Assembly: GCF_000143415.4 (NCBI RefSeq) | Contig: NW_003314306.1 | Coordinates: 163,620 to 227,619 of the forward strand | Direction of reading: 5' to 3' | DNA length: 64,000 bases | Origin: Selaginella moellendorffii | Lineage: Eukaryota; Plantae; Lycopodiophyta | The notes under the pieces: generated by a model | Told to the model about the DNA's origin: nothing | Seen by the model: the letters and a program-made list of their open reading frames with translations, nothing else | Database searches by the model: none | Part shown: positions 23,896 to 51,700 of the stretch, in pieces | Layout of the letters: each line of letters starts with the position of its first letter | How positions within the stretch are numbered: the first letter of the stretch is position 1 | Program-made: the position numbers and the translations under genes

Positions 23896-23980
23896 TGGGA
23901 TGAGAGAGGCTCGAACTCTCGACCTCAGGATTGCTTAGCAGCTATGAGACCTACGCGCTGACCAACTGCGCCACCATCCC
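23896..23980 (-). tRNA. tRNA-Met(CAT), elongator, with 11-nt intron (23932-23942)
   Basis: GGGATGGTGGCGCAGTTGGTCAGCGCGTAGGTCTCATA-intron-ATCCTGAGGTCGAGAGTTCGAGCCTCTCTCATCCCA, followed by a T7 terminator. Confidence 0.95.
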
Positions 23981-24958: not shown

Positions 24959-25039
24959 GTTGAGATGGCCGAGTTGGTCTAAGGCGCCAGATTAAGGTTC
25001 TGGTCCGCAAGGGCGTGGGTTCGAATCCCACTCTCAACA
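24959..25039 (+). tRNA. tRNA-Leu(AAG)
   Basis: GTTGAGATGGCCGAGTTGGTCTAAGGCGCCAGATTAAGGTTCTGGTCCGCAAGGGCGTGGGTTCGAATCCCACTCTCAACA. Confidence 0.96.
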
Positions 25040-25042
25040 CAT

Positions 25043-41466: not shown

Positions 41467-41537
41467 TGCACTGCCCGGGAATCGAACCCGGGTCTGTTCC
41501 GTGGCAGGGAACTATTCTACCACTAGACCAGCAGTGC
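41467..41537 (-). tRNA. tRNA-Gly(GCC)
   Basis: GCACTGCTGGTCTAGTGGTAGAATAGTTCCCTGCCACGGAACAGACCCGGGTTCGATTCCCGGGCAGTGCA, T5 terminator downstream. Confidence 0.95.
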
Positions 41538-46443: not shown

Positions 46444-47723
46444 CTTAATGAGGAGATATATATATATGTATTCCCCCTGTGCATGGAATTAATTTACGCT
46501 TTTACATAGTTTCTAAGGATATGGCAATGCAAAAAAGATATGGTAGTTGAAAGCATTATATGGATTAAAGCAGTTCTCTTAAGTGTGGTATCAAAGATTT
46601 GATAAGGCATTGCACCAAAATCCACTAAGTCAAAATGTACATAAAAGGGAAGGGTGATAGCATGATTATCCCTACCTTATATATGGATGATCTACTTGTC
46701 ATGGAAGGGGATGGTGATGCTATCTAGCAGTTGCAAGAGAGATTTTCCCAATGCTTCCACATGAAAGACCTTGGCATAACAAAAGTTTTTTAGGGTGGAG
46801 TGGGATTGGAAGAAGATGATGCTTAAACTCCACCAACATCAAGATATTAAGTAGCTCTTATGCCAGTTTGGCATGGAAAATTACCACTCTATACATGCAC
46901 CCTACTGTCAGTCTTCTTATGCCTCAAGATGGAAGAGACATGCTTGATCAATTGTTTGATATATTTGGCACTATCTGCTCATCCTGATATCTATTATGCA
47001 ATTGTCACCCTTAACCAATTCAGTTTTGACCTTTGCATGGAACACTGCAAAACATGTCTTGCACTACTTGAAGGGGATTATGGACTAGGGGCTGTATTAC
47101 TCTAGCATTGACATAAACTTAATGCTAGTTAACAAAAGATGCTAATTGATTATTAAATTTTACATGTAACTGCTATTAATTGGGTGAGTAAGAAACAAAT
47201 TGTGGTCGCTATCTCTTTTGTAAAGGTTGAGTACATTGCTTTAACCACCAGTTTTTATGGGAAAGTATAGCTAAAAGGCCTTTTGGAAGGAGTTGGCACT
47301 ATATAGTCACACCCAATCATGTATAGTATGACAATCAAAGCAACCTTGCTATGGTAAAGAACCCAGTTTTTCATAAGTGCAACAAGCACATTTTCATTCA
47401 ATTTCACTACAATGAGCAAGTTGAAAGGGCATAATGCATGTTGCCTACATGGCTAGTGTGGACATGCTTATTGACATCTTCACAAAACCTCTAGAGCCTG
47501 ATAAGTTTCTCAACGTCCAAGGGAGCCTTGGGATAATTTTAACTTCAGCTTATGGGGGAGTGTTAGAGTAAGTTAAACTCACATATATAGTGGGGTTTTG
47601 ACCCTTTTTTCTCTTTTTGATTGGGAGCTATTGCTAGCTATTTCTCAACTACAATGTGTTCAGGCAAAATCATACCCCAACATTTTATGAAAATGCTAGC
47701 AAATATTCTACAATCAAGAAAGC

Positions 47724-48705
47724 TGTAACACACCTTATCTCTCTCCCCTTAAGCCAACTGGAAAAGGGGTAATTGCTTGATGAGAGAGCCCTTCGTGGCT
47801 ATTTTATCCCCATTTATCCCCAAGGTTCCACGGTGACAATATATCCAAATCTCATCCCATGATCACATGCGCTACATTCACCCCCCCTTCAGAAATGTCA
47901 ATGTCCTCATTGACTATTGACTAACAACCCCTACTGAGCCAAGGGGAACCAACACCTCCATTTTCGCACTGAATCTACAAATCCTTCCATTGTGTAGACC
48001 AGCTATTGCATGTGAGGCAACTAGTCATCCACCCGTACCGCAGTGCAAGCAACTAAAGGGAATGACCCAAGAGACGATCTATGGGGTTCAAATATAAAGG
48101 GAAAGAGCCCATGAAAAAGAATGCACCCCCTTTTTCAATTGGTTAAAAGTTTTGGGATATTTGGGATTAAGCGTCCTTGGGTTTGAATAATACTGGGCTT
48201 CCCAGAAGGTCACCCAAATTCAGAAGCTTACACACATGAAAAAGAATGCACCCCCTTTTTCAATTGGTTAAGAGTTTTGGGATATTTGGGATTAAGCGTC
48301 CTTGGGTTTGAATAATACTGGGCTTCCCAGAAGGTCACCCAAATTCAGAAGCTTACACGCAGTCCCATGGTGGATACCTTCGTTTGGGATGCTCCACAAG
48401 AAGAAGGACAAGAAGAAGGACGTACGCATGGATGCCTAATATATACGATTTTCAAATTTAGGGGTAGGAATATACCTTGCTCAAGGGTATATTATATTTT
48501 AGGTAAATGGGAATCGAACCTGTGCCATTTGCTCTGATACCAACTGTAGCGCACCTTATCTCTCTCCCCTTAAGCTAACTGGAAAAGGGGCAATTGTTTG
48601 ATAAGAGAGCCCTTAGTGGCTATTTTATCTCTATTTATCCCCAAGGTTCCAAGGATCCACGGTGACAGTATATCCAAATCTCATCTCATGATCACATGCG
48701 CTACA
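47724..48705 (-). mobile_element. Complete TRIM (non-autonomous LTR element) with internal 5S-rRNA-like cassettes
   Basis: LTRs 47724-47876 and 48545-48705 (TGTA..TACA); TSD AAAGC on both sides; tRNA-iMet PBS (reverse complement TGGTATCAGAGC, 48531-48542); PPT 47877-47888; no coding region; 125-bp tandem unit 48110-48359. Confidence 0.93.
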
Positions 48706-51700
48706 AAAGCTAAATTATCTTTCTTTAGCCAATTGCAATCCACTATGTGGACTAGTTCGTCTTCACTTGTCATTGTTTATAGTTGACTTTAGTTGACTTC
48801 AATTGTCCTCATTTGCCTTCGGTTGTCACTAGATTACATGGATTATATAAATTACATGAATTACATGCTATAGCTAAAAAAAATTAGTTTAATATTAATT
48901 AACAAAGTGAAACAACTAAAGTTTAAACTTGGGAGTAATTTTTAGAAGTTAGATAATTTTTAGCTGCTTGCACTTATGCTCAAAGATCTTAAATAAGGGA
49001 TTTATAGATTAGTTTAGTAGTTGAATAATATTATCATATTTATGGAGTGAGGCTTGCTATAACACCTCAATAACATGGTGGTTTGGTTTTTTAAAAGACA
49101 TTAGAATTCATCCAACAAATTTTTTTATGGTCTCATAGAGCTATATATTTGTTCATACTTATAATATATATTAACTAACAAGATAAACATATTTTATGTA
49201 ATTTTTTATATCCACTTTTACTTTCTATGGAGATTTGAAAATTAAATTCTATACATTCCCTCACACTAAAGATACAACATTATCCTTAATGTGGTTGTAA
49301 GGTTTTCTAAAAAGGATCATTAGTAATTAAGTCAGTTTATTTTATATTTTGGTTCTAGTTTTTTTTTCCTCCATATTAAATACAAGTTTTTTTTGTGAAA
49401 AAGGCAAAATTTGATAAATAAAAAATGAAAATTATTAAAAAATTTAAAAGCTTATTCATGATGTGAGTGCTCGAGAGTTATAATAAAAGCTCTAGATATT
49501 TAGATTTACCTTCATCAAACTTTTTATTTCTAATAAAAAATATTGATAAAGATAAGTCCAAACATCTAGAGCTTTTATTAGATTATTGCACACAATTGCA
49601 AAAACCTAAAAATCCTCAATTGATTTATACAATGTAGGATAGAAATATAATTCAAAGTTATAATGCAAACATTTACAAATGGCATGATCAATTCTATAGA
49701 ATCCTGAAGAACTATATGAGTTATTACAAAATGTTTAAACCAACTTATGATTTTTAAATGCCAATGGAATCTACACCAATTGATCCACATAATCACATCT
49801 TTCTATGTGGGCATCCCAAGCTTCCTCCATAGCATAATCTTAAAGCCATAACTCTAAACTAAAACAAGGGACTTTGAGGGCCATTATAATTCCTAAAACA
49901 CAACTACCAATAAATGATAAAATTTGTCTCTACATCTTCTTCTTAATCAACTTCTAAAACCTCTACTAATTTAGACACACAATTAATGTCAAAAAGTGTC
50001 TCTATCTTCTCTTTAGTCAACCTTTAAGACTATTGTTAACTTAGAATTACAACTTTTGTCCTCATCCAACATCACATATTAGACGTTGGACCACTCCATT
50101 GGTCTTCGTATCCTCATTCCCTCCTCAAAAGAAAATAAAAACACTTTTAAAACTCTCTTAGTTCTATTTGAATTTCTTGTGTTTATCTTCACTCTATTAT
50201 ATATGTTTCACTCCACTATTGTATTTACTCATACTCACTCTATTAAAACTAAATATTCTATTCAAACTTATTACACTAGTTATCACTTCATAATCTATGT
50301 TATTTCACTTCATTGTTAGGGCTGGATTGCCACTGTTCCGTTTACCCCTTTTTTGAAAAGAAAAAAAGTTTGAGGGATGGCTAAAGAGAGGAAGTGAGAA
50401 AATATTAAGGAAGAAAGAATGTACAAAAAAGTGGATAAAAAAGCATTGGAAGAGGACATTTTAAATGCATCCAAGTGGAAATAAGGAAATAAAAAGCCTA
50501 TCCTTATTTTGGAAGCAACATTATATCCTTGAAGAATGTTCTTATAAAAAAGTTTACATCTTATAGCATACTACCCTAGTTCTCAAAACCTTTATTAACC
50601 ACACTATTGTTCTAGTAGACATTTGTCATAACATTTGGATTTTAGAGCATTGCTTTGGTCCTAGATTTTGTAATGGTTGACTACAACCAAATTACCTCAA
50701 CACTTATGAAGGATTCCATGATCTTAGGATAGGCTTGGTATAGGCATCCCCTAGCACTATAGAGATCTTAGATGGTTGCATGAAAGCCACTCTTTACAAT
50801 GCTTATGACTTACCTCTACAAGAGTAGAGGTGCATTCAAATCATAGATTCTTCCTCTTCAAGGCTTCCTCAAGAGTTGGAAGTGGTCTTCTTCGAAATGC
50901 TTGAGGATTCATCTCTACTATAACTCAAGGTGTATTTAGACAGTTTGACTACTTCTAGAGGCTTTAGTAAGTCCCTATAAGATAGTAGGGGGAGGATTCT
51001 AGGGGAACTAATTTGATTAAGGAATGTTATATTTATATGGTGGGTGATGATATGAAGTTTAAAGTTAAAGTGAACATGGATGGACAAGTGGGGTGACTTG
51101 GTGAAGTGTCAAGAGTCGGCTTTAACTCTTTCGGAAGATTGAATGGTTGATGCTCTCAATTCAAGTATAAATACTCAAATACTTTGTATAGCTTATCAGA
51201 ACCTCACTCTATCTACATGCTAGAGCACCTTAGTGGCAAAAAGTGGGGAGAATACCTACAAGTCTCATGTTAGGCTACGGTATTTTGAAATATCATTTCA
51301 AGATCTTTGATTGTGAAAAGGATCTTTTTGCTTAGTAACTAGGAGTATGGTTATTTGGTGAGGAAGTCCTAATAGTTAATGGGATTTAATGGATAGACCT
51401 TTCAACCCTAACCCAATGGCAATATTGAAGAGCATTGCCATGAATGAAGAAAGGCTTCATGGGTTCAAAGAAGGGATATTTGTCATGAATGTGATTTTGG
51501 GTATCAAAAGTTATCTATTGGCTAGTCCTTTCAGATATTCTTTCCTTACTGCTAGAGCAGAAGGTTGGTTTTTGTCGCGCATGTGACTTCGGGTATCGAA
51601 AGTTATCTGTCGACTAGTCCTTACGGACACTCTTACCTTACTACCATGATGGCAGGAGGTCGGTACTGCTGGTTCCCTTTATTGGCCCCTCTTGTTCAAG

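Follow-up and report, generated by a model that had tools for sequence, protein, structure and literature searches.

The closest described relatives of the sequence considered here are the Cassandra elements, TRIMs which carry a 5S segment within their LTRs. The published Cassandra query comprises box A (RGTTAAGYRHGY), an interval of 15–25 nt (typically 18), box C (RRRATRGGTRACY), and the iMet-type PBS TGGTATCAGAGC, located 5–200 nt after box C (Kalendar et al. 2020, PMC7215508). In the literature searched, Cassandra is reported from ferns and angiosperms only (PMC7215508, PMC10853983, PMC10886601), and no report of it in lycophytes was found. The Ajax TRIMs of nemerteans show that the 5S-in-LTR architecture can arise by convergence (Kojima 2024, PMC10886601). 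In Selaginella moellendorffii, a survey of TRIMs reported no 5S sequence in TRIM families other than Cassandra, and named no Cassandra from this genome (Gao et al. 2016, PMC4717578).

The window, i.e., the whole 64-kb stretch of S. moellendorffii DNA that was analysed, contains two 5S-like cassettes which the original prediction assigned to the interior of a single TRIM. The results presented below indicate that two unrelated miniature LTR retrotransposons are very probably nested here, the 5S pieces being the LTR of a Cassandra-type element that lies inside an ordinary TRIM and was then rearranged. The outer element had been described as a complete 982-bp TRIM with LTRs, an iMet PBS, a PPT, and the TSD AAAGC, and each of these parts was found in its predicted place, on the minus strand:

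47719–47723, no strand: left TSD of the host TRIM, AAAGC, read directly; the same 5-mer stands at 48706–48710
47724–47876, minus strand: 3' LTR of the host TRIM, 153 bp, TG...CA, a direct repeat with 48545–48705
47877–47889, minus strand: PPT of the host TRIM, GAAGGGGGGTGAA in the minus-strand reading, read directly and adjoining the 3' LTR
47877–48043, minus strand: internal domain of the host TRIM, PPT side, covered by contigs of other family copies, which resume at 48364
48363–48530, minus strand: internal domain of the host TRIM, PBS side, matched from 48364 at 19/20 by the loose end of the empty site
48531–48542, minus strand: PBS of the host TRIM, TGGTATCAGAGC, of the tRNA-iMet type, an exact match
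48545–48705, minus strand: 5' LTR of the host TRIM, 161 bp, a direct repeat with 47724–47876
48706–48710, no strand: right TSD of the host TRIM, AAAGC, read directly

The two LTRs are identical at 142 of 153 aligned bases, 10 of the 11 mismatches being transitions, and they differ by one 8-bp indel. Without the nested insert the host TRIM measures about 663 bp and contains no 5S-like sequence. Short LTRs, PBS, PPT, a 5-bp TSD, the absence of coding capacity, and a length below 1 kb (663 bp without the insert) all characterize it as a TRIM. With about 663 bp, LTRs of 153–161 bp, non-coding content, and very high abundance, it is typical for this genome when set beside the S. moellendorffii TRIM families SmoRetroS1-8 (PMC4717578), a likeness drawn from described features and not from assignment to a named subfamily. 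No further copies of the host TRIM or of the nested-LTR family were found within the 64-kb window, and the only PBS TGGTATCAGAGC in it is that of the host TRIM, on the strand opposite to the nested LTR.

Two minor features of the host TRIM may be recorded here. Just inside the PBS, its sense strand (48508–48530, minus) reads GGCACAGGTTCGATTCCC, a word like the tRNA T-arm or box B (GGTTCGATTCC), which could either derive from a tRNA or extend the pairing with the primer tRNA; a 12-mer from this word recurs in the T-arm of a tRNA-Gly gene (41477–41488), and about 15 extra nt are present near 48508–48530 in other host-TRIM copies (loose ends at 48500). In addition, seven RNA reads (run X21) match just the 50 nt at 47731–47780 of the host LTR and continue on both sides into unrelated sequence; apparently, a transcript from another part of the genome includes a fragment of this LTR family.

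Between the two parts of the host internal domain lies a segment with termini of its own:

48039–48043, no strand: left TSD of the nested LTR, CGCAG, present as a single copy at paralogous empty sites
48044–48357, plus strand: putative nested LTR of a second, 5S-bearing Cassandra-like family, TG...CA, 314 bp (189 bp without the duplication), with TG/CA ends and a 5-bp TSD
48358–48362, no strand: right TSD of the nested LTR, CGCAG, read beside the end of the insert

The two predicted internal units of 125 bp were recovered within this segment by a repeat search and blastn:

48110–48234, plus strand: tandem unit 1, 125 bp, 98% identical to unit 2
48235–48359, plus strand: tandem unit 2, 125 bp, 98% identical to unit 1

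When unit 2 is set in the phase 48233–48357, its end coincides with the end of the LTR, and LTR positions 67–189 are 99.2% identical to 48235–48357 (1 of 123 positions differs).

The 5S likeness of the units was evaluated against real plant 5S genes from metagenome contigs (L068:467–585 and L021:1037–1155; Rfam, 110 bits). Plant 5S arrays were found by scanning such contigs for a plant box-C word followed by an Rfam check, and the control plant 5S genes scored 54–110 bits. As had been claimed, the plus-strand 31-mers starting at 48167 and 48292 are 24/31 identical to plant 5S genes, corresponding to 5S positions 51–82 in both L068 and L021. The reverse complement of 48195–48216 matches the 5S box-C region, beginning at position 84, at 20/22 versus L068, the same value as predicted, and at 21/22 versus L021 (the latter counted by eye). 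Within each unit, the box-A-like stretch is read from the plus strand and box C from the minus strand, and the flipped relation between them was correctly described. A box-C pattern with up to 3 mismatches occurs just twice in 64 kb, in both cases within the units, where shuffled sequence leads one to expect none; the minus-strand local 5S score of 41 compares with a maximum of 26 in 5000 dinucleotide shuffles and of 26 anywhere else in the window. With an nhmmer profile built from 97 plant 5S genes, box C on the minus strand gave E = 7e-4. The plus-strand box-A side is weak by itself (E = 0.38), and only its placement next to box C, at the expected 5S positions, makes it convincing. The Rfam 5S model (RF00001) gave no match at E ≤ 10, either on 3.5 kb or on the 221-nt cassette, and we therefore regard the cassette as a rearranged 5S fragment and not as a 5S gene. 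The likeness is far above chance, and the cassettes are 5S-derived. Weak covariance matches to PVT1, CssrA, Atu_C9, and MIR162 are far below the gathering scores and were set aside as chance.

The sequence motifs of Cassandra can be located in each unit as follows:

48131–48135, plus strand: T5 run, resembling a Pol III terminator, after ATGCAC, repeated at 48256–48260 and placed as in the control loci L019 and L042
48165–48176, plus strand: box-A-like GATTAAGCGTCC, repeated at 48290–48301, with 2 mismatches to RGTTAAGYRHGY
48177–48194, plus strand: spacer of 18 nt from box A to the box-C position, repeated at 48302–48319, its length as in the Cassandra query (PMC7215508)
48200–48215, minus strand: inverted box-C segment, the reverse complement of GGGTGACCTTCTGGGA, repeated at 48325–48340

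Most other copies have G at 48166/48291, which leaves 1 of the two mismatches in box A. At the position where box C is expected, the window copy has a 13-mer with 8 mismatches to RRRATRGGTRACY, while box C in colinear relatives reads GGGCTGGGTGACC, with 1 mismatch to the published motif (by eye). The window copy thus lacks a colinear box C because the segment is inverted, and the family does not lack one. The 5S segment is located within the LTR, and so is the T-run that resembles a Pol III terminator. Two metagenome loci that satisfy the full published query including the PBS, L019 and L042, served as angiosperm Cassandra controls; L042 also shows the start of the second LTR. In an alignment of the nested LTR with these two loci, an ATGCAC block and a subsequent T-run are common to all three upstream of box A. 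A 5S-type start would be expected 50 nt upstream of box A, and the T-run is located about 15–19 nt beyond this point. In the nested LTR, as in L019 and L042, the resemblance to 5S extends no further than just past GGGAAGTCC. With a profile of 33 Cassandra-like segments, 84–93 nt of each unit could be aligned, compared with 33 nt with the 5S profile, at E values of only 0.09–0.27. Metagenomes of plant-associated samples contributed the control loci (L019:2296–2610; L042, minus strand, with the PBS at 1828 in reverse coordinates) as well as about 35 others; among them, these contigs contain 5S rDNA arrays of the host plants and angiosperm Cassandra LTRs.

The nested LTR thus resembles Cassandra (PMC7215508; Maiwald et al. 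2024, PMC10853983) in having a 5S-derived box-A-like stretch, an 18-nt spacer, and box C in a short LTR of about 190 bp, in the sense orientation of the LTR (box C being colinear in the relatives), in the T-run following a GCAC block upstream of box A, in the point at which the 5S likeness ends, and in belonging to a high-copy family whose relatives are transcribed. It differs in its lycophyte host, the published Cassandra being from ferns and angiosperms, in having C where the box-A motif has G, in the weak likeness outside the boxes (E about 0.1), and, in the window copy, in the inverted box C, the partial LTR duplication, and the lack of a PBS or a partner LTR. The boxes of Cassandra have been described as following the host's own 5S gene in their substitutions (PMC10853983); those of the present family are C in box A and CCCGGG in box C. 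It shares with Ajax (PMC10886601) the presence of only the 5S promoter part (box A, IE, and box C) in the LTR of a TRIM and the 5-bp TSDs; Ajax, in contrast, has an animal host, tRNA-Leu as its primer, and an independent origin. We read the nested LTR as that of a Cassandra-type family, which may be homologous to Cassandra or may resemble it through convergence. The suggestion of a Cassandra relative in a lycophyte is supported by the layout of box A, 18-nt spacer, and box C in an LTR. As for the further suggestion that the 5S portion is placed unlike that of Cassandra, box A does look antisense to the TRIM, since the nested LTR is opposite to it in orientation; the 5S portion is nevertheless within an LTR, as in Cassandra, namely that of the oppositely nested element.

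Evidence on other copies came from public contigs and reads aligned to 47400–49000 (runs X1, X4, and X7, and the RNA-seq run X21). The original prediction had asked whether non-inverted versions exist, and they do. RNA reads of X21 and one contig of X4 agree with the LTR as far as 48199 or 48324, beyond which they read GGGTGACCTCCCGGGAAGTCC AAACTCAGG. Here box C is colinear, and after it comes the LTR tail that the window has behind its inverted segment (AAATTCAGA, 7/9); relatives in the normal orientation are therefore present and transcribed. Of the sequence matched by the X21 reads, about 38 nt lie upstream of box A and are not 5S-like, so that the reads derive from LTR copies and not from 5S rRNA. 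The non-inverted versions appear to dominate. Summed depth, taken in 54-nt bins, drops about 10- to 20-fold across the inverted part, and contigs reaching across the bin borders can account for the depth that is left there, so that the inversion would be rare and may be confined to the window copy.

The one-unit LTR measures 189 bp and the colinear form 194 bp. The reverse complement of the colinear 21-mer (GGACTTCCCGGGAGGTCACCC) matches 48195–48215 at 18/21. The first 5 nt of GGACTTCCCGGGAGGTCACCC, GGACT, coincide with the GGGCT before box C, an overlap of microhomologies which accounts for the loss of 5 nt, and at the other end its final CC overlaps the CC preceding the tail. Relative to the colinear relatives, box C is inverted over 16–21 nt. 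Both units carry the identical inversion, which is therefore older than the 125-bp duplication. The units differ from each other at 1–2 positions (about 1%) and the host LTRs at 11/153 (7%); the nested event and the duplication are therefore younger than the host TRIM.

These observations can be arranged into the following probable series of events. An ordinary 5S-free TRIM (about 663 bp, minus strand, iMet PBS) would have inserted at AAAGC, and an element of a second family, with an LTR of roughly 194 bp and a Cassandra-like 5S Pol III control region, would then have integrated in the opposite orientation at CGCAG in the internal domain of the TRIM. Only LTR sequence of this second element is left. 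In the window copy or in its source, a template switch at the quasi-palindrome of 5S helix IV may have exchanged the 21 nt of box C for the reverse-complementary sequence, at a net cost of 5 nt: a single switch to the opposite strand and back via the microhomologies would suffice, and two later G-to-A transitions in CCCGGG would complete the match. Finally, a 125-bp stretch of the LTR would have been duplicated. The duplication can be read as a 125-bp slippage involving a 2-nt CA microhomology at 48110/48360 and one CpG-to-CpA transition. The inversion resembles the known short template-switch (quasi-palindrome) mutations, in which a hairpin segment is likewise exchanged for its reverse complement with microhomology at both ends (here GGGCT/GGACT and CC). 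In this case, the mechanism is deduced from the sequence alone and might have operated during DNA replication or reverse transcription. If so, the window copy would be a clear case from nature of an inversion produced by template switching at the 5S hairpin.

The history of the two units might have been different. It is possible, although we consider it rather unlikely, that the insert was once a complete Cassandra-like element, a later deletion having removed its internal domain together with some 65 nt at the start of its 3' LTR. The units would then be the 3' parts of two LTRs, and the inverted box C would already have been present in a source that was retrotransposed regardless. In the phase 48108–48232 / 48233–48357 unit 1 ends at the LTR terminus CTTACA and unit 2 at the LTR end, i.e., both units end exactly at LTR termini, and the single difference among 123 LTR positions is what would be expected of young sister LTRs; the identical inversion in both units would also be accounted for. 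The junction, however, fits a simple 125-bp tandem duplication with CA microhomology equally well, no remnant of a PBS or PPT is present, and the depth profile gives no sign of other inverted copies. That the units are in fact what is left of a 5' and a 3' LTR from a single Cassandra-like element, complete and with box C already inverted when it retrotransposed, seems improbable to us. Were it true that an inverted source element had moved, a Cassandra-type TRIM would have been mobile without an intact 5S box C, and the Pol III promoter would be dispensable for mobility.

Whichever history produced the two units, insertion into the host TRIM is attested by other copies of this TRIM. Of the X1 contigs, 43 follow the host TRIM as far as 48044, where they turn to CCCACGGTGGATACC..., a sequence that matches the window from 48364 at 19/20. 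The joint 48038->48360 is present in two contigs, one X4 contig joins 48044 to 48408, and X7, which carries a second organism label, shows the same loose end as X1. The 319 bp that other copies skip equal the 314-bp piece plus one CGCAG. The combination of TG...CA ends, a 5-bp TSD, and an empty site in paralogs is the signature of an integrase-mediated insertion of an LTR element. Loose ends at 48047, 48199, and 48324 place the nested piece in other contexts as well, which suggests that it is the LTR of a separate and very abundant family. Summed contig depth over the TRIM and the cassette region is about 1e5–1e6, compared with about 250 in the flanks, a depth that does not equal copy number because Logan contigs are short, collapsed over repeats, and broken at them. 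In the single-copy flanks (47515–47634 and 48725–48875), X1 differs from the window by several SNPs, by a 14-bp insertion behind 47590, and by a 9-bp insertion behind 48846, and it holds only 39% of the 31-mers of the element; this run, the best of the DNA runs, is from another haplotype or accession than the window.

The same contigs bear on the claim that the cassettes are internal and duplicated. They do lie between the LTRs of the TRIM, with one LTR segment doubled, but they are not part of its own domain, being contained in an insert with TG...CA ends and the TSD CGCAG. Their conservation across family copies, on which the original prediction had staked itself, was not observed, the cassettes being absent from the other host-TRIM copies. 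Independent capture of 5S sequence by the interior of the TRIM is likewise contradicted by the separate insert and by the host-TRIM copies without cassettes. We thus find it very hard to maintain that the TRIM family itself carries internal 5S cassettes, acquired either by independent capture or by recombination with 5S or Cassandra RNA during reverse transcription. The position of the cassettes between the TRIM LTRs would agree with such an origin, and the flanking CGCAG could be read as template-switch microhomology; against it stand the canonical family copies without the segment, the TG...CA ends and 5-bp duplication, as integrase would produce, and the derivation of the segment from a separate high-copy family known from other contexts.

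The LTR status of the nested piece rests on its TG/CA ends and its 5-bp TSD. A search for other family copies in a protein collection via a short ORF (41 aa, 48091–48213, minus strand) yielded no candidate. A 16-nt inverted match between the start of the nested LTR and 48959–48974 was rejected, being at chance level (E = 8.7). The insert is short and contains only the 5S promoter part, as SINE3 does (PMC10886601), and might for this reason be taken for a 5S-derived, SINE3-like SINE moved by a LINE. With TG...CA termini, an exact 5-bp TSD, a 3' end without an A-rich or simple-repeat tail, and a layout that agrees with Cassandra LTRs down to the upstream T-run, such an identity is highly doubtful. 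That the 5S likeness is a product of chance, as the lack of an Rfam 5S match and the weakness of the isolated box-A side might suggest, is hardly conceivable, given that none of 5000 shuffles reached the box-C score, that no pattern match is expected in shuffled windows, that the two 5S pieces stand side by side in the 5S positions expected of them, with a spacing of exactly 18 nt, and that colinear relatives exist.

With respect to function, box C is generally regarded as the main TFIIIA contact of 5S genes, on the basis of work on Xenopus. In the window copy it is destroyed as a colinear element, and this copy is for that reason most likely a functionless relic that is not transcribed as a Pol III unit of the 5S type. 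The minus strand offers a box-C-like word (2 mismatches) without a box A at the required distance. Among the 21 reads from X21, none matches the window copy at ≥99%, and all come from other, colinear copies.

Taken alone, the nested arrangement of a Cassandra-type LTR in an ordinary TRIM is of minor importance, being a dead, nested, and rearranged retroelement which offers neither a new architecture nor a new 5S capture. The broader significance lies in the abundance of a Cassandra-type LTR in a spikemoss, which would imply either that the lineage originated at the base of the vascular plants or that the design was invented independently for a third time.

Elsewhere in the window, three tRNA genes were predicted, tRNA-SeC(TCA) at 23896–23980 (minus strand), tRNA-Leu(AAG) at 24959–25040 (plus strand), and tRNA-Gly(GCC) at 41467–41537 (minus strand). 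The call of tRNA-SeC(TCA) is odd for a land plant and may reflect a mis-typed or suppressor-like tRNA. The MIR162-like covariance match, at 49482–49579, scores 22 bits versus a gathering score of 75 in an AT-rich stretch with high bias, and is most likely due to chance.
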